Sequence record: NC_028829.1
DNA: 64,000 bases
Reading direction: 5' to 3' (one strand)
Shown here: positions 4,715 through 44,538 of the stretch, in pieces
Layout of the letters: every line of letters begins with the position of its first letter
Numbering within the stretch: position 1 is the first letter of the stretch
Notes under the pieces: model-generated
The model's input: only the letters and a program-made list of their open reading frames with translations
Database searches by the model: none
Told to the model about the DNA's origin: nothing
Program-made: the position numbers and the translations under genes

Positions 4715-4736
4715 ACGATTCGTCCCGTCTAAGGTG

Positions 4737-4759
4737 AAAAAGACCCGCAATTAAGCGGG
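4737..4759 (-). terminator. Terminator after uvsX
   Basis: CCCGC-TTAATT-GCGGG followed by TCTTTTT on the minus strand. Confidence 0.75.
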
Positions 4760-4768
4760 CCAGTATCG

Positions 4769-5869: not shown

Positions 5870-5890
5870 TATTTTACCTTCTAACTAAGA

Positions 5891-5915
5891 AAGGAGCAGC
5901 AAAATGCTACCCCTT
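5891..5915 (-). terminator. Hairpin or probable terminator after the ClpP-like gene
   Basis: AAGGGGTAGC-ATTTT-GCTGCTCCTT, 10-bp stem with two G-U pairs on the minus strand. Confidence 0.55.
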
Positions 5916-5935
5916 AAATTACAACTGAGATTAAA

Positions 5936-6652
5936 TTAAGCTTTCTTTGCAGCACGCTTGCGTTTTGGCTTTGCGGGCTCATCTTCAACTTCTTCATCTT
6001 CAGGGTCGACCTTTAGTTTGCGAAGCTCTTCAGCTACGCGCTCTTGAATCTGCTCTTCAAGTTGAGATTCGATATCACCTGCAAGTTGAGCTTCAGCTTC
6101 TTTCATTTCATCTTCGAACTTCTTCGACATTTCTTGAAGACGTTCTGTAACCTCTTCTGGCGTCAGCCACAAGTCTTGGTTATGGTTGATGATTTCGTCG
6201 ATCTCGTCAGCATCAAAGAACGGTTCATAAAGAAGACCACATACGCGGTTTAAATGCTCTTCGTGAGATTTAGCCTGTTTCAACGTGTCTGGCATTTTAC
6301 CGATTTGACCGCCGCTCGATGTATGGAACATGAACGTTGCAAATGGGGATACGTGCCAACCATTACAAGCTAAGAAAATCATTGTACCTGCGCTGCACAC
6401 TTCACCCTCTGCGCACGCGATGACTGCACCTGCTTTAGATTGCATAATTGCATCACAGATTTGACATGCAGCATAGAAGTTACCACCAGGTGTATTCAAG
6501 TGCAAGTAAATCACGTCTGTTTCGGACGCCGTATGCAGAATTTGAAGCATTTCTTCATAATCATTCGGCTCTTCAATCGCACCGTTGATGTAGAAATCAT
6601 GACGTACAGAACCAGCCCCTGCGTACCATCCAATGTTATTTTTAAAAATCAT
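5936..6652 (-). CDS. clpP: ClpP-like serine protease with an acidic/basic C-terminal extension
   Basis: LNTPGG, VCSAG (catalytic Ser), FMFH (catalytic His), DLWLTPEE. Confidence 0.85.
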   Translation of the reverse strand: MIFKNNIGWYAGAGSVRHDFYINGAIEEPNDYEEMLQILHTASETDVIYLHLNTPGGNFYAACQICDAIMQSKAGAVIACAEGEVCSAGTMIFLACNGWHVSPFATFMFHTSSGGQIGKMPDTLKQAKSHEEHLNRVCGLLYEPFFDADEIDEIINHNQDLWLTPEEVTERLQEMSKKFEDEMKEAEAQLAGDIESQLEEQIQERVAEELRKLKVDPEDEEVEDEPAKPKRKRAAKKA

Positions 6653-7194
6653 AAGTCACCCTTTGTTAACTTTTCGATGAAAATCGTAGAGCCGTTCTGG
6701 CATTCGACGATCTCTGATTCCCCGTTGTGTGGGAAATACCAGAAAATTTTAGTTAAATCAATCGTAACGTCGTACGCTTCGATTTCATCAACGATTGTAG
6801 TTTTATATATGTGGTCTGCAAAAGGTAATGCAGACTCGATAACACTAGGGCCACCGATAACACTTATTTTATCAAAACCTTCTATCAGATAAACATTTTC
6901 GATGTTCTTAATCAGGTCTTGAAAGGAGTCACACTTGCAGTAAACATCGGCTTTTTGACCGTTTTTTGCAGTCGCTGTATCGCTGCTACTGAGCACAACG
7001 TGCGGGCGGTCTGCTAGTTTACCGGGAAGTGATTCGAATGTCTTAGAGCCCATTACAAGCACGCTATTCATAGTAACTGCTTTAAATCGAGCCAAGTCTT
7101 CTTTGTTATGTTTCCAAGGGAGTTTGTTTTGATTGCCGAAGGGCGCGTGTGGGGATTTACTCATACCGTGAGCGAAAACGATTTGAACTTTCAT
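6649..7194 (-). CDS. frd: Dihydrofolate reductase
   Basis: LPWK...EDLARFK, VMGSKTFESL, VIGG. Confidence 0.95.
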   Translation of the reverse strand: MKVQIVFAHGMSKSPHAPFGNQNKLPWKHNKEDLARFKAVTMNSVLVMGSKTFESLPGKLADRPHVVLSSSDTATAKNGQKADVYCKCDSFQDLIKNIENVYLIEGFDKISVIGGPSVIESALPFADHIYKTTIVDEIEAYDVTIDLTKIFWYFPHNGESEIVECQNGSTIFIEKLTKGDL

Positions 7195-7215
7195 TTAATC
7201 TCCTATAAAGAGAAC

Positions 7216-7237
7216 AAAGGGGCAATTAAGCCCCTTT
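7216..7237 (-). terminator. Terminator after gene 32
   Basis: Perfect stem AAAGGGGC/GCCCCTTT with a 6-nt loop. Confidence 0.8.
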
Positions 7238-7243
7238 AAATCA

Positions 7244-8170
7244 TTACTCGTCTAGCTCTAGGTCAGCTAGTAGTGCGTCTAGCTCGTCATCGACAGAATC
7301 AGTCACTGCCTCTTGTGAAGCAGGAGTGTCGTCAGTGTCGATAGTTGCGCTTGGTTTAGCAACTGTACGAGGTGCATTTGCTTGAGCAGGAGCACCAGTG
7401 TTCAGTTGAGCTTCAAGATTTTGAGCAGCCGTAGATGCTTTAGACTGAGCAGCGCCAGTCACTTGAAGAAAACGCTTCTGAAGGTCAGCTTCAGATTTAA
7501 ACGCAGACGGTGCAATGATTGCGTTTAGGTCGTGCATTTGGTCCCAGACTTCTTTCAGTTTAGCTTCGTCACCGCCGTATAGCTCAGTGCTTGGGCCGAA
7601 TTTAGAGTCGTCGTAGTTAGGGAAACCAGATACTTTCTTAGCTTTCAAGCTGAAGTTAGCACCATCGAATACACAAGTCACGTCCATGCCCGGTACACCT
7701 AGATCTTCATCTGCTTGAGCAGCTTGAGTGATCTTGTCAAGAATTTTCTTACCGAAACGGTATTTGAAAACTTTGCCTTCATTTTCTGGTGCAGCTTCAT
7801 CTTTGATTACAACGATGTTAGCCCAGTAAGAAAGAGTACGCTTGCGTTTACGTGCAATGTTTTGGTTATCTTCGTTTTCAGTTTTCCAAAGCTCGCCGTT
7901 AGCTTGGCAGCATGGACATGGAAGATCGATAGTCGAAGGACAGTTTTCGATGTACCAGTTACCGTTTTCTTTGAAACCGTGTGTGAAGATTTTTACAAAT
8001 GGTAGGTCGTCTTCGCCTTTAGCAGGCAGGAAGCGAATCACCGCAGAACCATTACCAAGCTTGTCAGTAGAAAGTTTCCACTCGTCAGCATTGTCGAATG
8101 ACTTTTTGCTTGACATTTGCTCTAGTTTTTCTTGAAGTTTTGCTGGAGATTTGCGTTTGAACATAGACAT
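7244..8170 (-). CDS. 32: Single-stranded DNA-binding protein gp32
   Basis: MFKRKS, AVIRFLP, HGFKENG.WYIENCPST...CPCC, KVFKYRFGKKI, acidic C-terminal tail. Confidence 0.97.
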   Translation of the reverse strand: MSMFKRKSPAKLQEKLEQMSSKKSFDNADEWKLSTDKLGNGSAVIRFLPAKGEDDLPFVKIFTHGFKENGNWYIENCPSTIDLPCPCCQANGELWKTENEDNQNIARKRKRTLSYWANIVVIKDEAAPENEGKVFKYRFGKKILDKITQAAQADEDLGVPGMDVTCVFDGANFSLKAKKVSGFPNYDDSKFGPSTELYGGDEAKLKEVWDQMHDLNAIIAPSAFKSEADLQKRFLQVTGAAQSKASTAAQNLEAQLNTGAPAQANAPRTVAKPSATIDTDDTPASQEAVTDSVDDELDALLADLELDE

Positions 8171-8171
8171 A

Positions 8172-8233
8172 TTGTATTTTACCTTGTATTTTATAGTATG
8201 ATATAGTATCGTATAGTGTGTTATTGTATTTTA
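8172..8233 (-). promoter_or_regulatory. Probable gp32 autogenous translational operator (unstructured A-rich repeats)
   Basis: TAAAATACAA x3 and three ACTATA units at 10-nt spacing in the gene 32 leader. Confidence 0.55.
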
Positions 8234-8874
8234 CTTTGATTTTTTATTTGAATAAACATTTCTTTAGCAAGAACTTCGTCGATTTTCAGCAACTTATCGT
8301 ATGCTAAAGCTCGTGTCTTGAACTCGTGCCAGAAGATATCGTCTCCGTAATCTTTGTCGATTACAGGTACGAAGTTCAATAATCTATTCAGAATTACGAA
8401 CGTCTCAATTGAGATAGTATTTCGTAACACGAGTTGCATTATAACGGGATGCCCTTCGCCTCTAAACAAATCTTTGAATTTTTTATTCTCTCTATTTATA
8501 AGAGTAAAAATCGAAAGTAGTTCATTTTTGTAGTGTTGACTGTAAATTTCCATAAATCCCGTATGTTTCAACCAGAATTCATGAGCGTCAGCACCTGCAA
8601 TCTCATAAGAAATCGCATTGGGGTTCGCTGCTAAGTTACTAACAAGCAACTGATAGCAATCATTCAATGTTAGCCGTTTGGCTAGCCGTTCAAAAAACAC
8701 CTTATCTGAACGCTTCTCGAACGCAGATCTAGGTGTTTTCATTCCGAGTTTATACTTGGAGATGTCGTACTTTCCGCCCATATGCGCCTTTACAGCACAA
8801 TAAACACGAAATACGCTATACCCATTGACCCAAGTCCGAGGCAGAACCAAATCGACTTCTAATAGTCTTTTCAT
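8221..8874 (-). CDS. 59: Helicase loader gp59
   Basis: 217 aa; KAHMGGKYDISKY, KRSDKVFFERL, ISIETFVIL align by eye with T4 gp59. Confidence 0.93.
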   Translation of the reverse strand: MKRLLEVDLVLPRTWVNGYSVFRVYCAVKAHMGGKYDISKYKLGMKTPRSAFEKRSDKVFFERLAKRLTLNDCYQLLVSNLAANPNAISYEIAGADAHEFWLKHTGFMEIYSQHYKNELLSIFTLINRENKKFKDLFRGEGHPVIMQLVLRNTISIETFVILNRLLNFVPVIDKDYGDDIFWHEFKTRALAYDKLLKIDEVLAKEMFIQIKNQSKIQ

Positions 8875-9112
8875 TTATCGCCTCAGTCTCAATTTTGTCT
8901 TTCAACGTCTGATTAATCAGATACGGGAAGCGACTAATGTCGTAATCGTATTGCTCAATGAAGAACAGACACGCTTCAAGATAGGTCATGGCGGGACAGC
9001 TATTATAAATCTCTTCAATTTCTAGAGAGATTTGCTGTCTAAGACTGCCTTTAATAGGCGGAACTAAATCACCAAGCTCTTCTTTTAAAACGTAGTTGTC
9101 TTTATTCATCAT
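8816..9112 (-). CDS. 33: Late transcription co-activator gp33
   Basis: TYLEAC...LKDKIETEAINE; position between dsbA and 59; start uncertain (9109-9124). Confidence 0.88.
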   Translation of the reverse strand: MMNKDNYVLKEELGDLVPPIKGSLRQQISLEIEEIYNSCPAMTYLEACLFFIEQYDYDISRFPYLINQTLKDKIETEAINEKTIRSRFGSASDLGQWV

Positions 9113-9383
9113 CTGCATCGTCAAAAAGCTTCTCGTATAGATTGTCTACCTTTTCATACTTCGCCTGTTCTTCTTGGCGGTTTTGTTTGTGATACATCTT
9201 CACAACTTTGTTGAAATCGGCAGGTTTGATTTCGAACTCTTCTTTTGCGCGATTCGCAATGTCTTTCATTAGATCGCGTTCAGAATCAATGCGCAACATG
9301 GAAGCAGACGCTTCTTTAACCATGTTAACTACTTCTTGCTTATCTTGCGGAGTAGAGATTGTTTCGTATTCAAGAATGTCCAT
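9102..9383 (-). CDS. dsbA: dsDNA-binding protein DsbA (T4 type)
   Basis: KDIANRAKEEFEI...FNKVVKMYHKQ; synteny rnh-dsbA-33-59-32. Confidence 0.9.
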   Translation of the reverse strand: MDILEYETISTPQDKQEVVNMVKEASASMLRIDSERDLMKDIANRAKEEFEIKPADFNKVVKMYHKQNRQEEQAKYEKVDNLYEKLFDDADDE

Positions 9384-9429
9384 CGTTACCTCAATATGTT
9401 TTGTTCAATGTCGTTGTTTCGTGCTGCTC

Positions 9430-9458
9430 ATTATACAGCAGCACATGTTGTTCTAAAC
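9430..9458 (-). promoter_or_regulatory. Promoter for dsbA: GTTTAG-N17-TATAAT, with the -10 enclosed by an 8-bp inverted repeat
   Basis: Read from sequence; an A-tract lies upstream of the -35. Confidence 0.65.
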
Positions 9459-9465
9459 ATTTTTT

Positions 9466-10398
9466 TTAGAATTCGCTCATGCTTTCAATAAGCTTATCTA
9501 ACTTCTTAGAAGCAAAATACATCATGATTTTACTTCTAGGCGCTGGCTTCTGCGCTTCAAACTGTTCGATTATGCTATCACTGATATTCTTAGGAATAAA
9601 CGCAAAATCTAACAATTTTCTGTTTTCTTCATAACGAGCAAATTGCTCTTCAGTTAAGAGCTTTTTAAGCTCATCTGGCGTTGATGTCATTAGCGTGCGC
9701 AACTCTTCTTTGCGAACAGATGGTGCACGACGACCATCGCCATGTGTGTAGTGATCATTCGGCGCTTTCAACGGTGCAATACCGTCTTTCTTATCACCTT
9801 TGATGCATTTAAACATGATGTCCATTTCTGGTGAACCATGCTTCGGCTTGACCCATTTCTTCTGAATCGGAGACCATTGACGTACAAGCTTGCTTGTGTG
9901 TAACTGAGTAAAGTCACCATCTGAAGAAGTAATCAAAACTGGAACGTTTTTACTCACGTAATAATTAGTCAAAACACCAATATGGTCATCGGCTTCGACG
10001 CCTTCAATGTCCATTACGTAATACGGCATGTTTTCTTTGATTTCTTCTTTAATCTGCGCCATTGCATTGAAAATCGTTTCGAAATCCCAGCCAGAGTCAT
10101 CACGCTGCTCACTACGTTTGTATTTGTAGTACCAAGCTTCTTTCTTGCGCCAATAACCGCCTTTACCGTTATCAATACACAAGATAATACGCGGGTATTT
10201 GAGTTTGTTCTTTAGCACGTTACTACGTAGCGTGTTAAGAACGATATGACGAATCAAATCAACTGTTAGTAGATCAGTCGGTTTGTATGTTGCCATGATT
10301 GTACTCAAGACAATCTGACTGAAGTCAACGAGATTAACACCCGCTGGCATACCATCAAACGATTTTGTCTTTCGCTTGAAGAACCCCTCTAAACTCAT
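9466..10398 (-). CDS. rnh: RNase H / 5'-3' exonuclease (T4 type)
   Basis: VDFSQI, EADDHIG, SSDGDFTQL, IKGDKKDG. Confidence 0.96.
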   Translation of the reverse strand: MSLEGFFKRKTKSFDGMPAGVNLVDFSQIVLSTIMATYKPTDLLTVDLIRHIVLNTLRSNVLKNKLKYPRIILCIDNGKGGYWRKKEAWYYKYKRSEQRDDSGWDFETIFNAMAQIKEEIKENMPYYVMDIEGVEADDHIGVLTNYYVSKNVPVLITSSDGDFTQLHTSKLVRQWSPIQKKWVKPKHGSPEMDIMFKCIKGDKKDGIAPLKAPNDHYTHGDGRRAPSVRKEELRTLMTSTPDELKKLLTEEQFARYEENRKLLDFAFIPKNISDSIIEQFEAQKPAPRSKIMMYFASKKLDKLIESMSEF

Positions 10399-10428
10399 GT
10401 GTCGTTTCCTATATGTTTATATCGTGTG

Positions 10429-10436
10429 TCTAAATA
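10429..10436 (+). promoter_or_regulatory. Late promoter variant TCTAAATA upstream of gene 34
   Basis: One mismatch to the T4 late consensus TATAAATA; recurs before other late genes. Confidence 0.65.
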
Positions 10437-10476
10437 TATCATAGCGAATTGCATATCTAAACAAAGGAGCAATGAA

Positions 10477-13400
10477 ATGTCAGAATTCCGCAGAGCATTT
10501 CGTGCGTCAGGTCTTGATGCAAGTGGTCAGAATGTCATTAACGTAGCAGACCCACGAGCAAATGAATTGTTCGACGGTATTAACCAAGGCTACTTTATTG
10601 AAGAGAACACTGTTCAAGAGTATGACCCAACACGAGATCACTATAAAGTAGACTTTATCGTTGAGTTCAATCAACGTCTATACAAAAACATTACCGAAAT
10701 CAATGCACCTGAACCTTTTGACTCGCAGAAGTGGCAGAAAATGCGTACCGACCCTGAATGGGAAGATACTGATTCATCGGTAGGCGCAAACGTCGGTGAC
10801 TTCTTGTTGTTAACAGCAAGCTCGGCAATCACTATTACACTGCCTGAAACACCATTAACAGGTGACACAGTTACAATCAAAGACGGTAAAGGCGTTCTTA
10901 CAACTTACCCTTGTACGATTGCAGCAGCGGGCGGCTTGACGATTCAACATTACGCCATTGACGGTTCAATTGAGTCTAAACCGAGTATTTCATTCAATAC
11001 CCCTAACAGCACTATATTCTTAGTGTACAACGGTATTGCATGGACATATCAGATCAATCAAGAGTTATACAATACGTATATTGACGACAGTCACCCAACT
11101 CAACAGGGTGGGTACTTATCAACTGGTGGTTATTTCACTAACGTTGGCGAGACAGTCACATATGACGGTTCAGTTAAGAAAATTGCAATTTCTGTACCAC
11201 TGAACCCGAACGTGGGCGATACAATTCATCTTAAAGATGTTGCGTATCTTGAGAATCAAACGTCGATTCAAATCGGTGTGAACCCGACTGCTACGGGTCA
11301 GGTTATTCAAGACCCTATTTCAGGCGAACGTAGTTCTGTTATCAGTCTTGATACTATCGGCGGCGCTGATATCACATTTATCGATGACAACGGTACTGGC
11401 GTATGGGTAATCACAATCGCGAACAACCCGCATTTATGGAACTATGTCGGGGATTCAAGCGCGGTTGAATTGAAGCCTCGTTCTCGTTACGCTATCGAAA
11501 TCGCAGATGCTGTTCCTGCAATGACGATCACACTACCAGAAAAACCAGCCGATGGTGACTGGATTGAGATCTCACACAACAAAACAGCTCATAAGAAAGT
11601 AACGATTCAAGTTCATCCGAATTTCGGTGATGATGACCCAGGTCACGGCCCCGATGAATACAAAGTATTCTTGGACTTTGAAACATATCGTTATCAAAAA
11701 TACCGTCATTACGTTGATTTCGTTCCATTCTTCGTTGAATCATTCGAAATTAGTGATTATGACAGCGGTTATTCACTAGTTCTATACTACGACGCGAGTC
11801 GTAAAGTATGGTCGTTCGGTAACATCGCGACTCGTATCGATATCGCTGATGAACTATACCGTAAACGCCCGGGTATCGTGCCATTAGCTGACCCAACGGA
11901 AGCTCTAGCACACGGGATTGAATATGCGCACCCTGAAGATGCAGCAGACCCTTGGGCTGATCAAAACCCACTGAAAGATCACGTAATCACGGTAGAGACG
12001 CTTGACGCTCGTCGTGCAGGTGAACAGCAAGTCGGTATGGCTCGTGTTGCTACTCTTGGAACTGATGAAGCTCTTGAAGAATCGCGTTCTGGTACGTTTG
12101 TTCGTTACCCAGATACAAACTTCAGACATGATCTGTTCATAACACCACGTAGCTTGAATGCGCGTACAGCAACTGAAACACGTCGCGGTGTAGTTGAAAT
12201 CGCAACTCAAAACGAGACGCGAAGCACAACTAACGATGTTCAAGTTCTAACACCGATGAAATTCCACGCTGCACAAGCTGAAGAAGATCTAACAGGTGTT
12301 GCGAAACTAGTCGAAGCGTCGAACAACATCAATGCTGGTGGTATTGTTACATCAACAGCGAATATGCGTTCAGACCGTTCAGTAAATGGTATTGACAATA
12401 CAGTATATGATAAAACTGATCATCTGCGTATCGTAACGCCTAAAATGCTTGATGAGTATCGCGCTACAGAGAATCAACCTGGTACATTATGGATTGCTAA
12501 GAGTAGTGAACTTCGCATCAACGACTCAACAGTTGATAACGCGATCATCACGCCTAAGAAATTAGCAGCGTGGAAAGCAAGCTCAACGGTTCGTGGTATT
12601 GCTCGTTCTGCTACACAATCTGAAGCAAATGCAACAACAGGAACTGGTGAATCGTGGACAACAGTCTTCATCACACCAGAAACGTTGAATAGCAGAACAG
12701 CAACTGAATCACGTCGTGGTGTTGCTGAAATCGCCACCCAAACTGAAGTTGACTCAGGTACAGACGATACTCGTATTGTTTCACCACTTAAACTGAAGAC
12801 ATGGCTTGACCGTGATCATTTCGTGACAGCAGGAACAGATGGTCTATCGCATACTGGTACAGTATGGGGCGACGTTACATTCAGCATCGCGTCAGCGACT
12901 GAAACACAACGTGGTACACTACAAGTTGCGACTCAAGCAGAAGCGAATGCTCAAACTGGTGCGCTTGATGATGTAATAATCACACCACAGAAGTTAAATG
13001 CGCGTCGTGCTACAGAAACACAAACTGGTATTGTACGTCTTGCAACTCAAGCTGAAGTAGAAGCGGCTACGGCAAGTACTGAAATTGTTGTTACCCCTAG
13101 TGATTTGCTTCACTGGACTAGATACTCTGATAGTTCACGTGCAAATGAAGCTCGATACGGTAATGTACAAATTGCAACGCCAGCAGAAACGTTCGTAGGT
13201 AACAGCACAGACGGTTCAACGCAAGCATATACTTCGTACTTGCGCGTTCCATATGCAGTATCACCTTACGGGTTACACTATGCATTGCGTAACTACTTGC
13301 CATTAAACGCTAAAGCTGATGACTCAGAATTACTAGATGGCTTGAACAGTACACAATTTGCACGCAGTGACGTTTCAGATACTATCTCAGGTGTTTACAC

Positions 13401-14160
13401 ATTCACAGAGAATGAAATTAAAATTCAGGGCGCAAACCCTCGAATCGAATTCACTGATACGACTGATGCAAACAGCACGCTTGAGCTTTACTACCAGTCT
13501 GGCAAGGTCGGGTTTACTGATGGGGTTGACAACTGGTTGCTTAGAGTAGCTAATGACGGTAATACTAACGTTTACGGTGCATTGACAACTGACAGCACGA
13601 TAACAGCAGGTTCAAGTATCACTGAAAACGAAGCAAGCGCAAACGTTGATGCAACATACGGGACTTATTCAAGCCCTGCAACAGGTTCACTTCGTAGCAA
13701 GTACTTGGGTATTAACAACGTGGCTAAAGCTTCTGAGAAGTGGGTTACAGCGCGTACAGTGACGTTCACTGGCGACTTGTCCGGTAACTTTACGTTAGAT
13801 GGTAGCGGAAACGTTACTTCAAACATTCAAGTTAACGATTATAGTCACGCTCACTCAGGTGAGAACATCACAACTGGTACAATTAACAATGATCGTTTGC
13901 GCAAATCAAGCCGCACGAATTCAGGTATTGTACAAGTAACAAGTGACGTGCGTACAGCAGACCCAGTGAATGCTTCAGACCCACACCAAGCTCTATCGGC
14001 TGGTGCTGGTAAGACTCTATCTGAGCGTATCGACTTGTTCACGCCAGACGGTGGTACAGGTGAGAGCGTTAAATACAGAGACTACATTCAAGTTGGTTCT
14101 GTAAGAATGTCAACTAATAATCAAGGCGTGTTGGAGTTTACGTACGGACACGCTATATAA
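10477..14160 (+). CDS. 34: Long tail fibre proximal subunit gp34 (start MSEFRRAF)
   Basis: FRASGLDASG.NVINVA N-terminus; many IATQxE...IITPxKL repeats; AAGGAG RBS before the ATG at 10477. Confidence 0.95.
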   Translation: MSEFRRAFRASGLDASGQNVINVADPRANELFDGINQGYFIEENTVQEYDPTRDHYKVDFIVEFNQRLYKNITEINAPEPFDSQKWQKMRTDPEWEDTDSSVGANVGDFLLLTASSAITITLPETPLTGDTVTIKDGKGVLTTYPCTIAAAGGLTIQHYAIDGSIESKPSISFNTPNSTIFLVYNGIAWTYQINQELYNTYIDDSHPTQQGGYLSTGGYFTNVGETVTYDGSVKKIAISVPLNPNVGDTIHLKDVAYLENQTSIQIGVNPTATGQVIQDPISGERSSVISLDTIGGADITFIDDNGTGVWVITIANNPHLWNYVGDSSAVELKPRSRYAIEIADAVPAMTITLPEKPADGDWIEISHNKTAHKKVTIQVHPNFGDDDPGHGPDEYKVFLDFETYRYQKYRHYVDFVPFFVESFEISDYDSGYSLVLYYDASRKVWSFGNIATRIDIADELYRKRPGIVPLADPTEALAHGIEYAHPEDAADPWADQNPLKDHVITVETLDARRAGEQQVGMARVATLGTDEALEESRSGTFVRYPDTNFRHDLFITPRSLNARTATETRRGVVEIATQNETRSTTNDVQVLTPMKFHAAQAEEDLTGVAKLVEASNNINAGGIVTSTANMRSDRSVNGIDNTVYDKTDHLRIVTPKMLDEYRATENQPGTLWIAKSSELRINDSTVDNAIITPKKLAAWKASSTVRGIARSATQSEANATTGTGESWTTVFITPETLNSRTATESRRGVAEIATQTEVDSGTDDTRIVSPLKLKTWLDRDHFVTAGTDGLSHTGTVWGDVTFSIASATETQRGTLQVATQAEANAQTGALDDVIITPQKLNARRATETQTGIVRLATQAEVEAATASTEIVVTPSDLLHWTRYSDSSRANEARYGNVQIATPAETFVGNSTDGSTQAYTSYLRVPYAVSPYGLHYALRNYLPLNAKADDSELLDGLNSTQFARSDVSDTISGVYTFTENEIKIQGANPRIEFTDTTDANSTLELYYQSGKVGFTDGVDNWLLRVANDGNTNVYGALTTDSTITAGSSITENEASANVDATYGTYSSPATGSLRSKYLGINNVAKASEKWVTARTVTFTGDLSGNFTLDGSGNVTSNIQVNDYSHAHSGENITTGTINNDRLRKSSRTNSGIVQVTSDVRTADPVNASDPHQALSAGAGKTLSERIDLFTPDGGTGESVKYRDYIQVGSVRMSTNNQGVLEFTYGHAI

Positions 14161-14168
14161 GGTGATTT

Positions 14169-16862
14169 ATGTACGAAAGACTTAAACGTGACGGCGATTG
14201 GCTATTAATCTTTCGCCATGATTCAACAGGAGGTGTGTTTTTCACCTCCGATGCTGAAGCACGCAGCGTCGGGACAGATCCCGACGTTGAACAAAAATTC
14301 AGTGCGTTGAACTCACTTGAGGAATTTCGCCGTGAAGACGGCAAATTCCAATTCAAGCTTCATTACCCAGAATTAGATGTAACAAACATTTGGAAGCAAA
14401 GCAGTAACTTTGCAGCTATTGATGTAGGTCAATATCTTACAAACGGTAACTTAGCGGGTGGGGAATACGTCACTGAACAAAATGCAAAAATCGGTTCTTG
14501 GGTTATTGTTGAGAAAGAAAACCCAGGGTCATCAAAATACGTCGTTGAGCAACCGACTGCGGCACTAGAAGATCAATTACGTTTTCAAGTTCCACAATCA
14601 CGTTTACTACCAAATAAAACATATACATTATCATGTTGGGTTGGGTATGAAGTAGACACTGATCACGATACGGCAGCTATATTTCACGCTCGTTGGTATG
14701 ATGGTTCAAATAATGACTATACATTAGGCGAACATACTGCGGGTGATGTGTTTGAATCGGCAGGAAACGAGTTGATAGTTGACGGGATTCTTTGGAAGCG
14801 TCATTATGCTCGTTTCACAACGCCTAGTACTCTTTCATCGAGTAGCATGTACTGGTATTGTTGTTATACAACTGATACAGGTAAATTACCAACAGGTAAG
14901 CGTTGGCTTACAAACTTCATGATTACAGACTCGCAAATCGTCAAAAACTATACTGGCGATTACGACGCTACAACTCGCGGCGTTAGAGGCTATGAACCGA
15001 TTTACATCGAAAGCACTGCAAATGATTGGGGTGGAATAGAATATAGCGTTTCAGCCAGTACGTTAGCAGACGGTTCAGTTGACATATCAAATTGGTATTG
15101 GGCTATTGGTGCAAAACGTTCTTGGCCAGACGCGACTACTACATTCCCGGGACCTGGTATAAACGTAAATCAAGCTGAATTGTGGGTATATGCTCCTGTT
15201 GGTTCTAGAATCGGTGAATATGAAGTATCAGCTAGGCATATCAGAGATTTTTCAAATAATAATATCAGACTGTTAGCAACAGGGGTCGCGGACGGAAGTT
15301 CAAACCTAGCATCATGTTATATAAACGATGTTAGCGTATTCACACCCGAAGCTAAACAACAATATCAAGTTCGTTTGATTATATTCAACGACGATATGAC
15401 AGTCAAAACTAATAGAAAATATCTTCTGAGTAGTTCTACAGAACGTAGCAACTTCATCAACGGTCTGAACGGGTTAACAACAGAGCCGTTTGTTATTCTA
15501 TCAAATGGGTCAATGTACGCAGATTCTGCGGTAGATGCTGCAATTCAACAGTATCACCCGATTGAGTATCGCGGTAGCTCTTACTTCAGTCAATACAGTT
15601 ATAGTTACTGTGCATTCGGTACAGGTCAATTGGGTATTGTATATGATCGTTGTATGTTCGACCATGAATCTGATGGTGACAGTGTTGTTGATACTGCATT
15701 CGAAGATAAAGCAGGGATTGGTTCAAACGGGTACGGAATTCCTCTAATCGAAACAATGACTGTTCCTACTGATACACGTCAACTTCTTTCAGATTATGGC
15801 GTGATAGACGGACAGTACTTGATTTACAAAGCTCGTGCATGTATTGATCGAAATTCAGCAATCGCAAATGAAGACAAAATGGCGAATCTTCGATTCTACA
15901 ACGTAGTTGGCGATGAAGTCGGCAGGCAGAATATTCATTTTTACAGTGCAGAGAAAAAAGAAACTCAAGAATTTTTCGTACAAGTACCAACAGGTGCAGT
16001 TAAATTTGCAGTTTGGTCTAACTTACAACCAGAGTACTTTGATTACGTCATATTGACTAAAGGCGGAATGTCAACCCCGAGTGGTATACCTCATATGATT
16101 TCGAACATAAACGGTATCGCTGCTCAAGAGATTGTCAATTCACCGATTACAGGTAACGTAGTTGATGACGATAGCTGGTGGCGAGCATATAACGCAGATT
16201 CAAACTTGTATGCAGGTATTAATATGCCAGTACAAGAAATTGACAACGTTCAATGGGGTAATTATGTGCTTTCAGGCGGTGAAAAGTGTTTCACACGTAC
16301 AGCAGGCTCATCATCTCCGATTGAAATGCAAGAAGTATCAATCGACCCATCTCGACCATACTTCTTATCGTTATGGGTTAATGCTATAGACAAGCAAAAT
16401 AGCTTCTTATATTTCAGTGTACGTGTCAAGAATTCATCTGGTGACTATAGAACTCTGAGATTATCAGACGGTAGTCGAACATCTACATATATCAATGTTG
16501 ACAGAGTGTACGGGTTTCCTGCTTCAAACAATCAATGGGTTTTATTGCAGGGGTATATTCTACCACATGATTGGACAGATGCACAACATCAAGCGTTTGC
16601 TGATAAGTTTAACAACTATTTCGGTGTAATAAACCCAGAAGATGATCCGACATATCAGACATCAAAGGGTGTAGGTTATTACACCACAAACGCAGACAAG
16701 TCTTTTAGATGGAATGCTGATGATGATAAGTTGATACTTCGATACAAAGATGAAACAACCGTTGAAAATCAAGTAATGTGGGCTTTCCCAATTGTTACTG
16801 AAGTCAATGTTGCTAGTTCGTTTGAAGACAACTTCACTGCAATCGACTTTGCAATGAAATAA
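14169..16862 (+). CDS. 35: Enlarged tail fibre hinge protein gp35 (897 aa) with extra N- and C-terminal domains
   Basis: Follows gene 34; central region (~aa 355-510) resembles T4 gp35 by eye; extra fibrinogen-like and jelly-roll-like segments. Confidence 0.7.
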   Translation: MYERLKRDGDWLLIFRHDSTGGVFFTSDAEARSVGTDPDVEQKFSALNSLEEFRREDGKFQFKLHYPELDVTNIWKQSSNFAAIDVGQYLTNGNLAGGEYVTEQNAKIGSWVIVEKENPGSSKYVVEQPTAALEDQLRFQVPQSRLLPNKTYTLSCWVGYEVDTDHDTAAIFHARWYDGSNNDYTLGEHTAGDVFESAGNELIVDGILWKRHYARFTTPSTLSSSSMYWYCCYTTDTGKLPTGKRWLTNFMITDSQIVKNYTGDYDATTRGVRGYEPIYIESTANDWGGIEYSVSASTLADGSVDISNWYWAIGAKRSWPDATTTFPGPGINVNQAELWVYAPVGSRIGEYEVSARHIRDFSNNNIRLLATGVADGSSNLASCYINDVSVFTPEAKQQYQVRLIIFNDDMTVKTNRKYLLSSSTERSNFINGLNGLTTEPFVILSNGSMYADSAVDAAIQQYHPIEYRGSSYFSQYSYSYCAFGTGQLGIVYDRCMFDHESDGDSVVDTAFEDKAGIGSNGYGIPLIETMTVPTDTRQLLSDYGVIDGQYLIYKARACIDRNSAIANEDKMANLRFYNVVGDEVGRQNIHFYSAEKKETQEFFVQVPTGAVKFAVWSNLQPEYFDYVILTKGGMSTPSGIPHMISNINGIAAQEIVNSPITGNVVDDDSWWRAYNADSNLYAGINMPVQEIDNVQWGNYVLSGGEKCFTRTAGSSSPIEMQEVSIDPSRPYFLSLWVNAIDKQNSFLYFSVRVKNSSGDYRTLRLSDGSRTSTYINVDRVYGFPASNNQWVLLQGYILPHDWTDAQHQAFADKFNNYFGVINPEDDPTYQTSKGVGYYTTNADKSFRWNADDDKLILRYKDETTVENQVMWAFPIVTEVNVASSFEDNFTAIDFAMK

Positions 16863-16863
16863 A

Positions 16864-16885
16864 AGAGCCCTTCGGGGCTTTTTTT
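16864..16885 (+). terminator. Terminator after gene 35
   Basis: AGCCC-TTCG-GGGCT followed by a T run. Confidence 0.92.
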
Positions 16886-16906
16886 ATACGCGAAGCGAAA
16901 AACGGT

Positions 16907-16972
16907 AAGAGGCGGAAAAATTCCGTCTCATCTTAGTAGTATTAGTGGTTTTAGTGATATTAGAAGTATTAG
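16907..16972 (+). repeat. Copy 1 of a 66-bp element; exact reverse complement of 42952-43017. Contains a hairpin and 9-bp TTAG tandem units
   Basis: Base-by-base comparison of the two loci. Confidence 0.95.
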
Positions 16973-16982
16973 AGGGATTAGT

Positions 16983-17012
16983 GTTTAAGCAACCAATGAT
17001 GAAATGTATACT
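16983..17012 (+). promoter_or_regulatory. Promoter for uvsY: GTTTAA-N18-TATACT
   Basis: Same geometry as the promoter at the second repeat copy. Confidence 0.6.
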
Positions 17013-17030
17013 TGATGACGCGAGGTTATT

Positions 17031-17444
17031 ATGAAGCTACAAGATTTAAAAATTGAATATCACGAAGACGTGAAAATTGACACAACTGCTTTAGAAACAG
17101 CAGCTATTCGAATTCCCGTTCTTCATGCGAAGTGGCTTGCATACCGAGCCGATGCAAGACAACTACTTATCAAAGCTGAAATGAAAATGGAAGCTGTGAG
17201 AAAAGACCGCTGGCTCTTTTATAGCGGCAAACATGACGATGAAGTTTGTGATTTCATCGTAGAAAAGAGTGAAATGAAATATGCTCTTGCGGGTGATGAA
17301 TATCTTCAACGTGCAATTGCTACTTTTCAACACATGAAAGATGTGTTATCATTCATCGAAGAAGCTTTGAAAGGCATTAGTCAAATGGGCTTCACAATCA
17401 AACACATTATTGACAACAGAAAAATTGAGAGTGGTATAGTATGA
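17031..17444 (+). CDS. uvsY: Recombination mediator UvsY
   Basis: 137 aa; EDVKIDTTALE, LHAKWL, KGISQMGFTIKHII. Confidence 0.93.
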   Translation: MKLQDLKIEYHEDVKIDTTALETAAIRIPVLHAKWLAYRADARQLLIKAEMKMEAVRKDRWLFYSGKHDDEVCDFIVEKSEMKYALAGDEYLQRAIATFQHMKDVLSFIEEALKGISQMGFTIKHIIDNRKIESGIV

Positions 17445-20156: not shown

Positions 20157-20669
20157 ATGATTAAAGAATATCTAAAGAAACAAACCAAGCGCGTAGTTGC
20201 AGAATTTGCAAAAGAGTACTACGACATCGAACTTGATAAATCGCTGACTAAAAGCAAGATGATCGACGAGTTATTCACACACGAGCTACGCGAGGTTAAA
20301 GAACTACCACTAGAATGCTCTGTAATCGAGTCTGAGACGCGCTGTGAATCAGTCGATGAATCGGACGCGATTGTAGTCAAAGAGCTTTCAGACGACGTTA
20401 AGAAAGAATTAGAAGGTGTTTCTGCTAATGCCCCTTTAGGTGATGAAAACGTAACATTAGTAATCAAGGACGAATTCAAGCCTAAATGGATGCCTACTTA
20501 TCGCCGTGGGGATGAGCTATATCAGCCAGTTGCGCATGATGTGATTCATGATTGGAATATAGGTCGACGCGACTCTCACGAATTGAAGACGATTGAATAT
20601 TGGGTTAAGCGAAATGGTCATCTTTTAGTTCACGACCGTCTTTCGAACAGCTTCATTTATCTGAGGTAA
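20157..20669 (+). CDS. inh: Inh (prohead protease inhibitor)-like protein, paralogue 1
   Basis: EFAKEYY.IELD N-terminal motif; C-terminus IEYWVKRNGHLLVHDRLSNSF; divergent from uvsW as in T4. Confidence 0.7.
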   Translation: MIKEYLKKQTKRVVAEFAKEYYDIELDKSLTKSKMIDELFTHELREVKELPLECSVIESETRCESVDESDAIVVKELSDDVKKELEGVSANAPLGDENVTLVIKDEFKPKWMPTYRRGDELYQPVAHDVIHDWNIGRRDSHELKTIEYWVKRNGHLLVHDRLSNSFIYLR

Positions 20670-25489: not shown

Positions 25490-25987
25490 CTATTTAATTG
25501 TGATGAATTGACTATTGCGAGTTTCACGCACTAGCACCTTGCCGTCTTTCTCGACATAATGCAAGATTGATTTAACTACGCGAAGATCTGATGCGAGTAC
25601 ATCATCAAGCGAACCATCCCCTGCGATAATAGCTTTCGCAGATGTAACCGCGCTATCAGAAGCAGTCATGAAAAATTCACGACCACGACGGAATGGCAAT
25701 GGCATTGGTTCAAATGATTCATCGATTGGTAGTTCTACTTTATCAACGACTTCAGTTTTCACTTCGGAAATTTCTTTAATTTCTTTGGTTTCATCTTTCG
25801 TCTCTACAAGAAGTTCTTCCCATGGTAGTTGTTTCAATGGCGTTTTACCTTCAGCTTCTTCTACAAGCTTCTTAGCCATTGCGCCTTTTGATTTACGACG
25901 GTCAAGTTCGATGCCGTAATATTCTTTTGCAAACTCGTCTAGTTTTTCTTTAGTTAACGACTCTGCGTGTTTTTTCAATTGACTCAT
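25490..25987 (-). CDS. inh: Inh-like protein, paralogue 2
   Basis: C-terminus SILHYVEKDGKVLVRETRNSQFITIK closely matches T4 Inh as I recall it. Confidence 0.82.
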   Translation of the reverse strand: MSQLKKHAESLTKEKLDEFAKEYYGIELDRRKSKGAMAKKLVEEAEGKTPLKQLPWEELLVETKDETKEIKEISEVKTEVVDKVELPIDESFEPMPLPFRRGREFFMTASDSAVTSAKAIIAGDGSLDDVLASDLRVVKSILHYVEKDGKVLVRETRNSQFITIK

Positions 25988-41129: not shown

Positions 41130-42812
41130 TTATACTTTTAGTACAAATGATTCATGGTCGATAGTAACGTTAGCCGCTGTGCTAGCCAATACTCGAATCT
41201 CACTCAAGTCATCTAGATTCGCAACGTTAGTGATTGTAACTGGAGTAACTTGGTTTGCACGAAGCGTACGTGTTTTCTCGATTGATGAGCTTGTGCCGTT
41301 ATCATGGTCGAAATCAATTCGAATCGTGATTGTAGTGTTTATCGGTGAAACAACAACCCAGTGAATAGACATCGTTTTGCTCAGTGATAGACCGTTACGT
41401 GTCAATACACCCCCTGCATACGTGTAGCCACTTACATCTGTATCAACGTTGAATAAACTAAACACATCTGTCGGAGTAGTTGTAAGATCAACAGTGCTCG
41501 GGGTATCAGAAGTCAACAATGCATGATCAAGCTGTGATTCGAGTTCTAGAACACGCGCACGTAAGGTGCCCACTTCACTATCACTCTGACCAACTACAGC
41601 CAATAGACCGTCAACGTCTGCTTGAGCAGAATCAACCAAACCACGGTTTTCTTGAATTGTGTACCATGCAGTAAATTCAACGGGGTTTGTACGCTCACCT
41701 AGACTAGACTCAAGCTGTGACACTCTGTAAGACACTGTGCCAGTTTCTGCGTCAGTAGCCCCTAAACGACCCCACAAGCTATTAATATCGTCGTTAAACG
41801 TCGATAGACGAGCTTTCATGCTACCAGAGTACACGTCACCTACTGCGTATGATCCGATATCAGTTGACACTTCAATATATAAGTTAGTAACGGCGCCAAT
41901 CTGTGACTGATTATCTGCAATTGTAACTTCATTCGCGCTAACGCGATCAAGTAGACCTGTAGTCGGTGTCTCAACTTCCTGTTGTAATAATGCAATATCT
42001 GATGCATTGTCTGAAATAGAACTTTCAGCATCATCAAGACGAAGATACACGGGACGAGCAGGGTCGGCATCTGCCGTTTCACCTAGTTCATCACGAATCT
42101 GATCAACAGAACCAACTTGCGAGTTTTGCTCTAGTTCGTATAAACGACCGTTGATTGAAAGCGGGATTGCGTTCTCGCCGATTTCAGCGTTGATCGTAGC
42201 TGTTTTGTTGTACAGATCTTCAATCTGATATTTCATACCAGTTGGGTTTGTACTAGGCGATGGGTTGCCATTGACATCGTAGTTACGATCATTACCAATA
42301 CGACGCTTGATGAAATATAGGTCTTTACGAACTGTATCGTTGTTTTCAACTTCGTTTGGAATATCTAGGCTGTTACGAACACCAATATCTGCTTCAACAT
42401 CTTCGATGCCTTTATGCAGACCTGTTGCAAGTACGTCAACACTACTCGGTACACCGATGTCATCAATGACGTTAGTCATTTGACCTTCAAGTACATCAAT
42501 ATCAAACTCGTTTTGTGACACACGAGAACCCAAGTTAGCGTCACCGCCACCTGTCAGTTCGTTAACAGTATCAACAAGTTCTTCAATTGCGCTTTGCTGT
42601 GCTTTTGTGTTGTAATGAGAGTTTAGAACGTTTTCTTGAATCTGTACTCCTGCGCGGTTTAATACACCGTCTGAAGTCGTGTCACCAGAAGCACCGTTGA
42701 TGCTTTCACCGTTCTTAGCCCAATTGATTCGAGTCTGATCGGGACGTTGAGAAGGATCTGGTTGACCATTTACATATCTAAGCTCTTCAATGATAGGCTT
42801 TTGAATTGTCAT
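41130..42812 (-). CDS. wac: Fibritin (whisker/collar), start MTIQKP
   Basis: YVNGQP...RINWAKNGE, GVLNRA; long segmented coiled coil. Confidence 0.9.
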   Translation of the reverse strand: MTIQKPIIEELRYVNGQPDPSQRPDQTRINWAKNGESINGASGDTTSDGVLNRAGVQIQENVLNSHYNTKAQQSAIEELVDTVNELTGGGDANLGSRVSQNEFDIDVLEGQMTNVIDDIGVPSSVDVLATGLHKGIEDVEADIGVRNSLDIPNEVENNDTVRKDLYFIKRRIGNDRNYDVNGNPSPSTNPTGMKYQIEDLYNKTATINAEIGENAIPLSINGRLYELEQNSQVGSVDQIRDELGETADADPARPVYLRLDDAESSISDNASDIALLQQEVETPTTGLLDRVSANEVTIADNQSQIGAVTNLYIEVSTDIGSYAVGDVYSGSMKARLSTFNDDINSLWGRLGATDAETGTVSYRVSQLESSLGERTNPVEFTAWYTIQENRGLVDSAQADVDGLLAVVGQSDSEVGTLRARVLELESQLDHALLTSDTPSTVDLTTTPTDVFSLFNVDTDVSGYTYAGGVLTRNGLSLSKTMSIHWVVVSPINTTITIRIDFDHDNGTSSSIEKTRTLRANQVTPVTITNVANLDDLSEIRVLASTAANVTIDHESFVLKV

Positions 42813-42852
42813 TTTTTGTTCCCTTGTATTGTAAATGAACATAGCTTACTAC

Positions 42853-42860
42853 TATTTATA
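42853..42860 (-). promoter_or_regulatory. Late promoter TATAAATA (wac)
   Basis: Exact consensus. Confidence 0.85.
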
Positions 42861-42900: not shown

Positions 42901-42930
42901 ATAATAGCAAGCATATTCATGGTATTAAAC
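42901..42930 (-). promoter_or_regulatory. Promoter GTTTAA-N18-TATTAT at the end of repeat copy 2
   Basis: Same geometry as 16983-17012. Confidence 0.55.
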
Positions 42931-42951
42931 ACGTATTTAATACTAATCATA

Positions 42952-43017
42952 CTAATACTTCTAATATCACTAAAACCACTAATACTACTAAGATGAGACG
43001 GAATTTTTCCGCCTCTT
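42952..43017 (-). repeat. Copy 2 of the 66-bp element (inverted relative to 16907-16972)
   Basis: Base-by-base comparison. Confidence 0.95.
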
Positions 43018-43041: not shown

Positions 43042-43070
43042 AAAAAAAGGGTGAGAAATCAATCTCACCC
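43042..43070 (-). terminator. Terminator after the second gp12-like gene
   Basis: GGGTGAGA-TTGATT-TCTCACCC-T7. Confidence 0.9.
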
Positions 43071-43110: not shown

Positions 43111-44538
43111 TTATGCAGTTCTTTCCCACATGTAAACAGTATAGTATGGCTGTACGTTATTATGTGGTTGACCACCACCTTCTGGTGATGAGTAATACAA
43201 GTAGTTGTCGTTATCAGTGCGACCTGAACCTGGGTTGCTTCTACCATATTCGTATGCAACTCCAAACCCTAGTCCGTTGCCACCGTAAGTCCAACGATCA
43301 CCCCAACCCGCGTGTTTGTGAGTTGGCATTGTTTCTTCAGTTAAGATAACTTCGTATTCACCACCTGTTTGTCTTACGTTGAATGTTCTACCACCATGTG
43401 TACCTTCAGATACAAGCACGCGACCTTCTGCAATTCTAGACCATGTTCCGCCGAATAGCGTAGCTGGTGATGTAGATTCAAGTGACATGTAAATAGCACC
43501 GACAGGGTACATATTCAACATAGCTGATGATTCAATCAGACCATTTGTCATTAACTGAGTACCACTTACAGATTGAACATCGTCAATTTTCAATGTACCA
43601 GTTACTGTCCCGCCTGAAACCCCAATCTTTTCATTATTCAACTTATAACCCATTGCAGCACTTAGTGCTTGAGTCGCGTCGTTTGTTGTTAGATTGTTTG
43701 CAAGTTTCGCAACACCGACACGTGAGCTAGTCGCAGTGAATAAATCTAATGTACCGACTGTGACTGCATGGTCATTAGATGTACGCGCATTTGCAACTGT
43801 TGAGTTCGGTAGATAGAAACCTGCCTTTCTCGTAGTTGTCGCTGTGCGTTCATTGAATCGATACGGTGAAATTGCTAGATTGTTTTCTGATGCTGATGTG
43901 CTGTTTACTTCAGTTGCATTTGCTAATCGAATCAACCCTTTCGTCGTTTCTGTAGCATCTGATGCGGTAGTATTCGCCCACACGTCAAGCATTTCCTTAA
44001 CTCGCTGTGGGGTCATAGCCACACTATTAGACAATGTGCCTGTTGTCGTTGCTTGTGCATATGTCGCTAGCCGTACAGCACCCGGCGAAGATTCAGTTGC
44101 ATAGAAACGAGTATTCAACGCGTAGTTCAATGTTTTAAGCGTGAATGCATGTTTCTGTGCTTCTTCTACTGCGGCTGTCGGGTCAATGTTATCAATCGTG
44201 CTGTTTGTAATCAGCTTCACAAAACCGTATTGAAGTTCTGTTGCAGTCGCGTGATTTTCCATCCAATAATTTAATGCAGATGGTGTCACTGCGCTTGTGT
44301 TATTAAGCTCATCTGCGACTGCTGCATTATCACTTAACAATGTAATACCCGCGACAGATGTTGATGCTATAGGGTAATCGGGTAATGGTTGAAGTGCATG
44401 AGCTTGTACAAGCTCAAGACACGTTTGGAGATCGTTATTACCCCCAGTAAGACCATCAAAGGAAGTACCTTCGACTTCAACTGTAACCGTACCCGCATCG
44501 TCAATCACGTGATTGAAAATTTGAGTTCCTTTACTCAT
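43111..44538 (-). CDS. 12: Short tail fibre gp12-like protein B (475 aa)
   Basis: gp12-type N-terminal repeats (ATETTKGLIRLA); YPVGAIY collar; HKH motif. Confidence 0.8.
   Translation of the reverse strand: MSKGTQIFNHVIDDAGTVTVEVEGTSFDGLTGGNNDLQTCLELVQAHALQPLPDYPIASTSVAGITLLSDNAAVADELNNTSAVTPSALNYWMENHATATELQYGFVKLITNSTIDNIDPTAAVEEAQKHAFTLKTLNYALNTRFYATESSPGAVRLATYAQATTTGTLSNSVAMTPQRVKEMLDVWANTTASDATETTKGLIRLANATEVNSTSASENNLAISPYRFNERTATTTRKAGFYLPNSTVANARTSNDHAVTVGTLDLFTATSSRVGVAKLANNLTTNDATQALSAAMGYKLNNEKIGVSGGTVTGTLKIDDVQSVSGTQLMTNGLIESSAMLNMYPVGAIYMSLESTSPATLFGGTWSRIAEGRVLVSEGTHGGRTFNVRQTGGEYEVILTEETMPTHKHAGWGDRWTYGGNGLGFGVAYEYGRSNPGSGRTDNDNYLYYSSPEGGGQPHNNVQPYYTVYMWERTA

Follow-up and report, generated by a model that had tools for sequence, protein, structure and literature searches.

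A module of about 100 non-coding bases is repeated at six evenly spread, syntenic sites in the genomes of KVP40-like vibriophages and is also present, as a single copy beside an origin-like iteron array, in chromosomal islands of Vibrio. We propose, with a probability of about 0.4, that it is a portable and strand-specific cis-acting DNA site for the initiation of replication or the loading of the replisome. The stretch of DNA analysed (64,000 nucleotides, here called the window) corresponds with 100% identity to genome positions 124001-188000 of ValKK3 (NC_028829.1 / KP671755.1), a KVP40-like phage of the genus Schizotequatrovirus, family Straboviridae.

Two copies of the module are found in the window, within the arms of an inverted repeat detected by a repeat search (16900-16988 and 42936-43024; 89 nt, 92% complementary). 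Their features are listed in Table 1. The 66/66 identity noticed in a first, sequence-only reading of this DNA (16907-16972 against 42952-43017) corresponds to columns 5-70 of alignment A1, which contains 27 module copies, and holds without a mismatch. The 21-nt hairpin string had its sole window matches at 16909-16929 (+) and 42995-43015 (-), with 0/100 in shuffled sequences, and a pattern of three phased units gave seven overlapping matches in the window, every one within the two copies, when 0.05 were expected. Sequence and scans confirmed in both copies the order that had been described, i.e., terminator, hairpin, six 9-nt units and promoter-like hexamers, and the Pfam match to UvsY did the same for the placement of copy 1 immediately 5' of uvsY. 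The promoter proposed in that reading stood only in part: the hexamers fit the T4-type early consensus, but of the two copies a sigma-70 scan called just the second, and weakly. Its description lacked one conserved part of the module, the GCG...AGC box at the 5' side.

Table 1. Features of the two module copies and their neighbours (window coordinates).
Feature	Position	Strand	Evidence or remark
Gene 35-like long-tail-fibre hinge connector, 5' neighbour of copy 1	14169..16862	+	ORF list; RefSeq NC_028829.1 gp263
Intrinsic terminator of the tail-fibre gene, copy 1	16863..16885	+	GC stem 16866-16879 and T run; terminator scan
5' box, copy 1 (GCGAAGC)	16890-16896	+	"Mini-hairpin DNA" motif, definition from PMC13037366
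Hairpin HP1, copy 1	16909..16929	+	9-bp stem, 3-nt loop, one G-T/G-U pair
10-nt junction of hairpin and first unit, copy 1	16928..16937	+	Columns 26-35 of A1, invariant in 27/27
Six phased 9-nt units, copy 1	16933..16986	+	Alignment A1, periodic scan
Early-type promoter-like hexamers, copy 1 (TTTAAG-17-TATACT)	16984..17012	+	Overlap the last unit; no sigma-70 scan call
uvsY, 3' neighbour of copy 1	17031..17444	+	Pfam PF11056 UvsY, E 3.6e-50
Short-tail-fibre-like gene, 5' neighbour of copy 2	43111..44538	-	Gp10_C domain and fibre repeats; Pfam PF21939, E 3.7e-23
Intrinsic terminator 5' of copy 2	43042..43070	-	Stem 43070-43049 and T run; terminator scan
5' box, copy 2 (GCGCAGC)	43029-43035	-	Same motif as copy 1
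Hairpin HP1, copy 2	42995..43015	-	Unique 21-mer; pairing across 27 copies
Six phased 9-nt units, copy 2	42938..42991	-	Alignment A1, periodic scan
Early-type promoter-like hexamers, copy 2 (TTTAAT-17-TATTAT)	42901..42929	-	Overlapping a weak scan site, 42928-42901
Fibritin (wac), 3' neighbour of copy 2	41130..42842	-	phrog_1056 fibritin neck whisker, E 1.8e-102

Read 5' to 3', the module consists of a GCG-N(1-2)-AGC box, a 9-bp hairpin (HP1) and an array of 5-7 units of nine nucleotides. The box was found in 19 of the 27 copies, always 5' of the hairpin; the distance is 18-24 nt in 16 copies and 57 nt in three metagenome island copies. Its variants are GCGAAGC (most copies), GCGCAGC, GCGTTAGC and GCGTCAGC, with the variation confined to the loop letters. 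They match the definition of mini-hairpin DNA, GCGNAGC or GCGNNAGC, all of them differing at N alone. Such mini-hairpins have an extraordinary stability as DNA but far less of it as RNA. They have been reported at the priming sites of G4 and St-1/alpha3, at ssiA of RSF1010 and at N4 promoters (PMC13037366). The box is absent at site 4 in every genome compared, apparently by a deletion that fused box and stem. At sites 3 and 6 it forms the final codons of unrelated upstream genes; that these genes were paralogues bringing the box along was considered and rejected, as they fall in different PHROGs.

In HP1, 88% of the alignment cells over the 27 copies are paired. Two adjacent pairs are swapped from GC to CG in three copies, a compensatory double change that is probably one event, and 13 copies have a G-T/G-U pair that forms on the sense strand only. 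HP1 is predicted to fold both as RNA and as DNA. No indel interrupts the stretch between hairpin and unit 5 in any of the 27 copies, and the unit period is exactly 9 nt. Over 135 units the letter counts are T 135 at positions 1 and 2; A 133 and C 2 at position 3; G 135 at position 4; T 98, A 29 and G 8 at position 5; A 70 and G 65 at position 6; G 67, A 57, T 6 and C 5 at position 7; T 95, A 32, G 7 and C 1 at position 8; and A 89, T 25, G 14 and C 7 at position 9. That is, the units share the same four opening letters, fixed in 133-135 of 135, and position 6 is always a purine. The array is 74% A+T and very poor in C (15/1215 letters; 13/675 at positions 5-9). Since it is rigid inside while its distance to the promoter or start codon varies, the module appears to act as a unit of its own. 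A coding peptide was rejected: the copies share neither start codon nor frame, and one frame has a stop in each unit. Upstream ORFs run into the module in differing frames, and the opening letters of the units never vary synonymously.

A blastn search with the module found six copies per record in KVP40-like phages, so that the description of copy 1 as one of two is true of the window alone; the periodic scan and a covariance model agree on six for the full genome. In ValKK3 they are located at ca. 53.0, 98.2, 140.9, 167.0, 192.9 and 245.9 kb, those at 140.9 and 167.0 being the window copies, and each of the six lies between genes, in the sense orientation of both neighbours. The same six syntenic sites are occupied in ValKK3, KVP40, VH7D and the distant 6E35.1a. 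The periodic scan and the covariance model (R1) both recovered 6 + 6 copies in ValKK3 and 6E35.1a, with the next-best match at 14 bits. At the uvsY site (site 1) the alignment is continuous across the module in 50/50 near-complete relatives, and the loss in relatives that the sequence-only reading had contemplated was seen in none of them. Identity between ValKK3 and 6E35.1a is 82-95% in the hairpin with the first four units and 50-80% in most of the flanking sequence, i.e., this part of the module is a local peak of conservation.

The gaps between the six sites are 45, 43, 26, 26, 53 and 55 kb on the 248-kb map. This is more even than six random points (P = 0.007 for the minimum gap and 0.005 for the CV), in a post hoc comparison that the synteny of the sites reduces to one independent sample; the figures are equal in 6E35.1a. 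The genes 3' of the sites are uvsY, those for fibritin, glutaredoxin, a dNMP kinase and a lipoprotein, and one of unknown function. The copies within a genome seem to evolve in concert, judging from their letters: at position 8 of unit 1 one letter is common to all six ValKK3 copies and another to four KVP40 copies, and hairpin variants shift between sites. In phage 1.081.O the module is tandemly duplicated. A blastn search of 50,697 phage records gave no match outside Vibrio phages. Scans of IMG/VR, metagenomes and GTDB with patterns that were IUPAC generalisations of the copies returned KVP40 and VH7D, six metagenome contigs and chance matches, and nothing further.

The surroundings of the module are similar at most sites. 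An intrinsic terminator is found on its 5' side at sites 1, 2, 4 and 5 (in 6E35.1a also at site 3), and a pair of hexamers like those of T4-type early promoters (consensus of Comeau et al., PMC4122927) on its 3' side at sites 1, 2, 4 and 5. At site 3 the hexamers are of the classical sigma-70 type and 37 bp from the module. At site 6 there is no promoter, and the Shine-Dalgarno and start codon of the lipoprotein gene are within the last units. The distance from module to promoter is 0-37 bp at 5/6 phage sites. Being absent at site 6, of another type at site 3 and at a variable distance elsewhere, the promoter does not count as a constant component of the module. The module is placed between terminator and promoter at 4/6 sites (5/6 in 6E35.1a), in a gap that is, to judge from these signals, poorly transcribed.

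As RNA, the sense strand folds at ca. -25 kcal/mol (z -2.9 to -3.7 in 4/6 copies) and the antisense strand at -9. Part of the sense fold is a fold-back helix of the array, with 87% of its cells paired, by A-U and G-U alone, never G-C, and with no compensatory change; we rejected the array as a selected RNA hairpin on these grounds and regard the helix as a by-product of the unit sequence. When folded as DNA, the box and HP1 are the sole structured parts, and both strands of the array remain open. An antisense Rho-loading site, considered for the G-free and unstructured antisense strand, was rejected as well, since box, phase and island copies would be left unaccounted for.

The module is not restricted to phages. 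A metagenome scan found four contigs that contain it and have otherwise no similarity to ValKK3. One of them (L063) carries a Thoeris system (SIR2-STALD and TIR proteins) and restriction-modification genes, and the 84-nt module (94% identity) is all that it shares with any phage record. The gene directly 3' of the module in this contig has 83 homologues, all of them chromosomal, in Vibrio or Photobacterium, with V. alginolyticus and V. parahaemolyticus, hosts of these phages, among the species. In V. alginolyticus (L088) the gene is part of an island of ca. 13 kb between core genes that contains also a large serine recombinase, a resolvase, an HTH protein and a clamp-loader-like AAA+ protein. 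A non-coding stretch of 1.2 kb in this island contains the module (72 bits) and, ca. 500 bp downstream of it, about ten iterons of 11 nt that immediately precede the gene, which we call rep-like. Three further islands from other species have the module at 88-98 bits. In all, it is present in 4/4 Vibrio chromosomal islands and four metagenome contigs at 72-100 bits and 84-94% identity, and its orientation is locked to the downstream gene in the 4/4 islands as at the 6/6 phage sites.

The island iterons are helically phased, have 11 or 12 nt and lie ca. 450-550 bp downstream of the module. Where the N-terminal part of the rep-like protein differs and alignment is limited to the C-terminal 148 residues (80% identity), the iteron type differs with it (there the period is 12 nt), and the module remains unchanged. 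The module is thus independent of the island's own specificity and would therefore have a shared reader, from phage or host. The region is arranged like an iteron origin and its initiator and is origin-like in this sense, a candidate origin. The rep-like protein had no match in Pfam, PHROG, NCBIfam or PDB, a fold search with its predicted model (pLDDT 60.7) was uninformative, and PLSDB gave no match to the island region. The islands have no capsid genes and carry defence cargo.

If the module is a replication signal, it would mark six evenly spread sites of replication start or of replisome or primosome loading, and would be read by a trans-acting factor, most likely from the DNA-replication machinery of the phage. 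Opening of the A+T-rich array would be aided by negative supercoils arising behind the early promoter nearby, or by transcription passing through. The sense strand would thus be exposed, and its mini-hairpin box and 9-bp hairpin would then fold and mark the site. The six phased units, unstructured as DNA, may bind an oligomeric protein, much as short tandem repeats do on a single strand within the unwinding elements of bacteria and plasmids. The Vibrio islands, whose single copy accompanies iterons and a rep-like gene of their own, would tap the same machinery during infection. Of the explanations considered, a replication signal best joins the fixed and even sites, the DNA-type box, the poorly transcribed gaps, the open array and the island copies; even syntenic sites, DNA-type box and presence in the origin-like region of the islands point the same way, to an origin-type element. 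A more specific version is doubtful, namely that the module is the replication entry site of Schizotequatrovirus (T4-family phages of ca. 250 kb) and was copied into island origin regions for parasitising that machinery during infection. The islands in question have a serine recombinase, a swappable pair of iterons and rep-like gene, a clamp-loader-like ATPase and defence cargo. Such a satellite-helper system, if real, would be new for T4-like phages and recognisable by a shared cis element.

Next comes transcription control, which we think unlikely. The units would be double-strand sites for a DNA-binding oligomer of phage or host that switches the early-type promoters or blocks read-through from late operons; in the islands, with no better prospects, the same sites would sense infection and turn on the rep-like gene. 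The closeness of the promoter at five of six sites is what would be expected (the last unit at site 1 overlaps the -35 hexamer), as are the four invariant positions together with purine-only or A/T-only ones, usual in a protein site, and the orientation locked to the downstream gene at every phage site and in every island. However, the promoter varies in distance and type and is missing at site 6, the six downstream genes make no coherent regulon, and even spacing, mini-hairpin box and sense-strand wobble pairs are left unaccounted for. The sharing with islands would also fit a phage-responsive transcription switch, or a recombination "hook", and to that extent weighs against a replication signal.

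An RNA element is somewhat less probable. Hairpin and array would be part of the mRNA, as a site of processing, stability or translation control, either an operator for a cooperative RNA-binding protein or, with the same low odds, an intercistronic entry site for RNase. It would explain that the module is invariably on the sense strand, with wobble pairs that form on this strand only, and the large difference in folding energy between sense and antisense. Sites 3 and 6 have no preceding terminator, and in the islands a promoter-like motif may precede the copy. Site 6, with no promoter and with the ribosome-binding site in the last units, looks more like an mRNA leader than a replication site. 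Nevertheless, at 4-5 of the 6 sites a strong terminator is followed by the module with no promoter in between, the helix of the array has A-U and G-U pairs only, and there is no Rfam match (with Rfam 15, 0 matches in the window reached the gathering score, and the best of those below it had 26 bits against a cut-off of 60). The placement between terminator and promoter at most sites and a box that is weak as RNA argue against an RNA role.

A recombination cassette, i.e., a dispersed repeat kept for homologous exchange like the PeSLs, has equally poor chances in our estimate, and so has its extension to the islands, where the module would be a homology "hook" into the recombination-dependent replication and packaging of the phage. 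Plasmids with homology to the phage replicate in T4-infected cells, and the cassette gains by this fact. Concerted evolution within the genome, the hairpin variants shifting between sites, the tandem duplication in 1.081.O and the PeSL-like flanks of terminator and promoter are also in its favour. On the other hand, the sites are stable and syntenic across the genus, away from indels and hyperplastic regions, unlike PeSLs; the invariant junction, the strict phase and the loop-only variation of the box exceed what homology needs; and copies in both orientations would risk inversions. Least probable of all is a host-factor site, where the array would bind a Vibrio protein (nucleoid or replication factor) exploited by phage and islands, two unrelated kinds of element that share the host genus alone: a general host site is disfavoured because it would be expected to recur on Vibrio chromosomes, and scans of one genome per bacterial species with two patterns gave no copy save three chance-like matches in unrelated phyla.

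We found no prior description of the module in Rfam or in the literature searched, which did not include the KVP40 genome paper. GenBank records have either no feature under it or only small and doubtful "hypothetical protein" ORFs. A 2025 study of Schizotequatrovirus does not mention repeats, and neither a KVP40 transcriptome paper nor replication data for any KVP40-like phage turned up in the literature searched. The even spacing, the absence of any loss at the uvsY site in 50 genomes and the presence in unrelated islands are new results. Replication origins have been mapped in T4 alone, where the role of the oriE repeats is still open, and a whole genus now offers six fixed and precisely bounded candidate sites. 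In addition, the module is a sequence tag that links broad-host-range vibriophages to previously unnoticed Vibrio islands with Thoeris and restriction-modification genes, and may help to show in what way these defence islands sense T4-like phages or exploit them.

Among known systems, the regulatory cassettes PeSL and PmSL are mobile elements of T4-like phages that have been described for nt-1 and KVP40 (PMC4122927). The flanks of the module are like those of a PeSL at four sites, with a terminator-like stem-loop, early promoter, Shine-Dalgarno and start codon, but the published PeSLs (PMC4122927) have neither a second hairpin nor a 9-nt array, and the module would be an extra insert between stem-loop and promoter. 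PeSLs are also found in hyperplastic regions near indels (PMC4122927), whereas the six sites of the module are fixed across the genus. The sequence-only reading had offered a PeSL-like cassette as an alternative; the resemblance extends to the flanks at 4/6 sites and ends at the location, fixed in four genomes and not hyperplastic.

The PLE of V. cholerae is a satellite of ICP1 that has its own iteron origin and initiator and uses the replisome of its helper. The Vibrio islands are similar to PLE-type satellites in their large serine recombinase, the iteron array before a gene of swappable specificity, the absence of capsid genes and the defence cargo. They differ in that a helper is hypothetical and the rep-like protein unclassified, and we know of no counterpart of the shared cis module in PLE. 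The forms of the box in the module include the variant reported for St-1/alpha3, and the box, as at the mini-hairpin priming sites, is located beside a larger hairpin, here with a 3-nt loop. The systems with mini-hairpins (G4, St-1/alpha3, RSF1010 ssiA and N4) have single-stranded genomes or extruded promoters, in contrast to the module, and to our knowledge no link of mini-hairpin DNA to a T4-type primosome has been described.

T4 has at least five origins; oriE has evenly spaced direct repeats and an early promoter, and oriF is located at uvsY. The similarity of the module to oriF (uvsY) and oriG (gene 34) is one of place and size: copy 1 is directly 5' of uvsY, just after genes 34-35, and its ca. 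100 bp are the size of a minimal T4 origin, a length that is enough for phage-dependent replication of such an origin. However, oriF and oriG have a MotA-dependent middle promoter and, 3' of it, an A+T-rich unwinding zone with a persistent R-loop, while the promoter of the module is early-type and the A+T-rich array lies 5' of it. A middle promoter of this kind has a MotA site near -30 and a sigma-70 -10 element, the letters of the Mot box being TGCTT (PMC4122927). There is no TGCTT between array and -10 in copy 1, and in copy 2 it lies 2 nt before the -10 and not near -30. Being upstream of the promoter, the module is not the downstream unwinding zone of a uvsY-type R-loop origin, and it fails the defining features of such an origin, both in the class of its promoter and in lying on the wrong side of it. 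The parallel with the R-loop origin at uvsY that had been drawn earlier is in this respect not supported. That in T4 the unwinding zone of an R-loop origin is 3' of a middle-mode promoter, and the module 5' of an early-type one, also tells against replication.

The closest parallels for a replication signal are two. Like T4 oriE, the module has evenly spaced short direct repeats (5-7 units with an exact 9-nt period) beside an early-type promoter, with the match being early-type at sites 1, 2, 4 and 5, sigma-70-type at site 3 and none at site 6; the role of the repeats is unproven in both. In T4 the activity of oriE depends on its early promoter. The module differs in its units of 9 instead of 12 nt, in the six copies per genome instead of one, in the joining of the array to two hairpin motifs and in a blastn similarity confined to Vibrio phages. 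Of the iteron-plus-promoter origin that the sequence-only reading had suggested, the phased array beside an early-type promoter, as in oriE, is retained, and the two convergent copies give way to six. The second parallel is with the single-strand repeats of unwinding elements, such as the DnaA-trios after a GC-rich 5-mer, the six ATCA at V. cholerae ori2 and the four GGTT in RK2. Those, like the module, are short tandem repeats on one strand, A+T-rich and beside a GC-rich element; ori2 has six repeats, as the module does, and the first units of the module can also be read as in-phase TAG triplets. Their period is 3-4 nt as against 9 nt, and no double-strand initiator boxes were recognisable beside the phage copies. 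By analogy, the module resembles oriE in its architecture and the repeats of unwinding elements in its logic.

Outside the phages, the module was found in a family of Vibrio chromosomal islands, of which the example in V. alginolyticus is listed in the table below together with the other features described here. The islands encode a large serine recombinase. They also encode an AAA+ protein of clamp-loader-like type, which shows 25% identity to the phage's clamp loader, and their iterons form with a rep-like gene a swappable pair. The metagenome island contig L063 additionally carries Thoeris and restriction-modification genes. The islands as a family are possibly undescribed satellites or defence islands. 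In the non-coding region of the islands the module is surrounded by three repeats of a 20-nt motif, and further small hairpin motifs with a GAA loop are found there.

Coordinates of the module-related features and of other repeats and signals
Feature	Sequence	Position	Strand
Chromosomal island (family also in L063 and L089-L091)	V. alginolyticus GCA_049394175.1 (L088)	4100-17300	
Island non-coding region	L063	3300-4080	
Island non-coding region	L088	8836-10001	
Tandem module pair, site 5	Vibrio phage 1.081.O (L046)	1495-1578 + 1659-1742	
Array-like sequence	IMGVR_UViG_3300030114_000018 (L051)	12141-12208	-
9-nt tandem repeat	6E35.1a, ~224.1 kb (L084)	around 24100	opposite coding strand
Three 76-nt direct repeats	window	12136-13051	+
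35-nt inverted repeat	window	20202-20236 / 25902-25936	
Late-promoter-like octamer	window	42853-42860	-

Among Vibrio phages, 1.081.O has a tandem duplication of the entire module, including the box, flanked by a tail-completion gene on one side and a dNMP kinase gene on the other. The GenBank records of the D480-group phages, F86 and CZ01 overlay the module with a short "hypothetical protein" CDS. Since the frames and starts of these calls disagree among copies, they are probably spurious.

An array-like sequence was also detected, with 42.8 bits under the covariance model R1, in an unrelated phage-like contig of 22% GC. Here the junction letters of the module are followed by five 9-nt units with identical opening four letters, the GC hairpin is absent, and a gene with an HTH_36 domain directly precedes the sequence. 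The periodic scan also returned a five-copy perfect 9-nt tandem repeat in the distant relative 6E35.1a; this repeat is unrelated to the module. In the record of this phage (L081, L083, L084), nrdD and nrdA are each annotated as two fragments, with a single break per gene and a pseudogene label.

Two other repeats were observed in the window. The three diverged direct repeats (64–78% identity) lie within the proximal long-tail-fibre gene and are probably a coding repeat, and the arms of the inverted repeat, 89% complementary, are separated by 5.7 kb. Finally, between the early-type hexamers of copy 2 and the fibritin start there is an octamer that resembles a late promoter of the T4 type; transcription of the fibritin gene may thus begin at an early-type as well as at a late start site.
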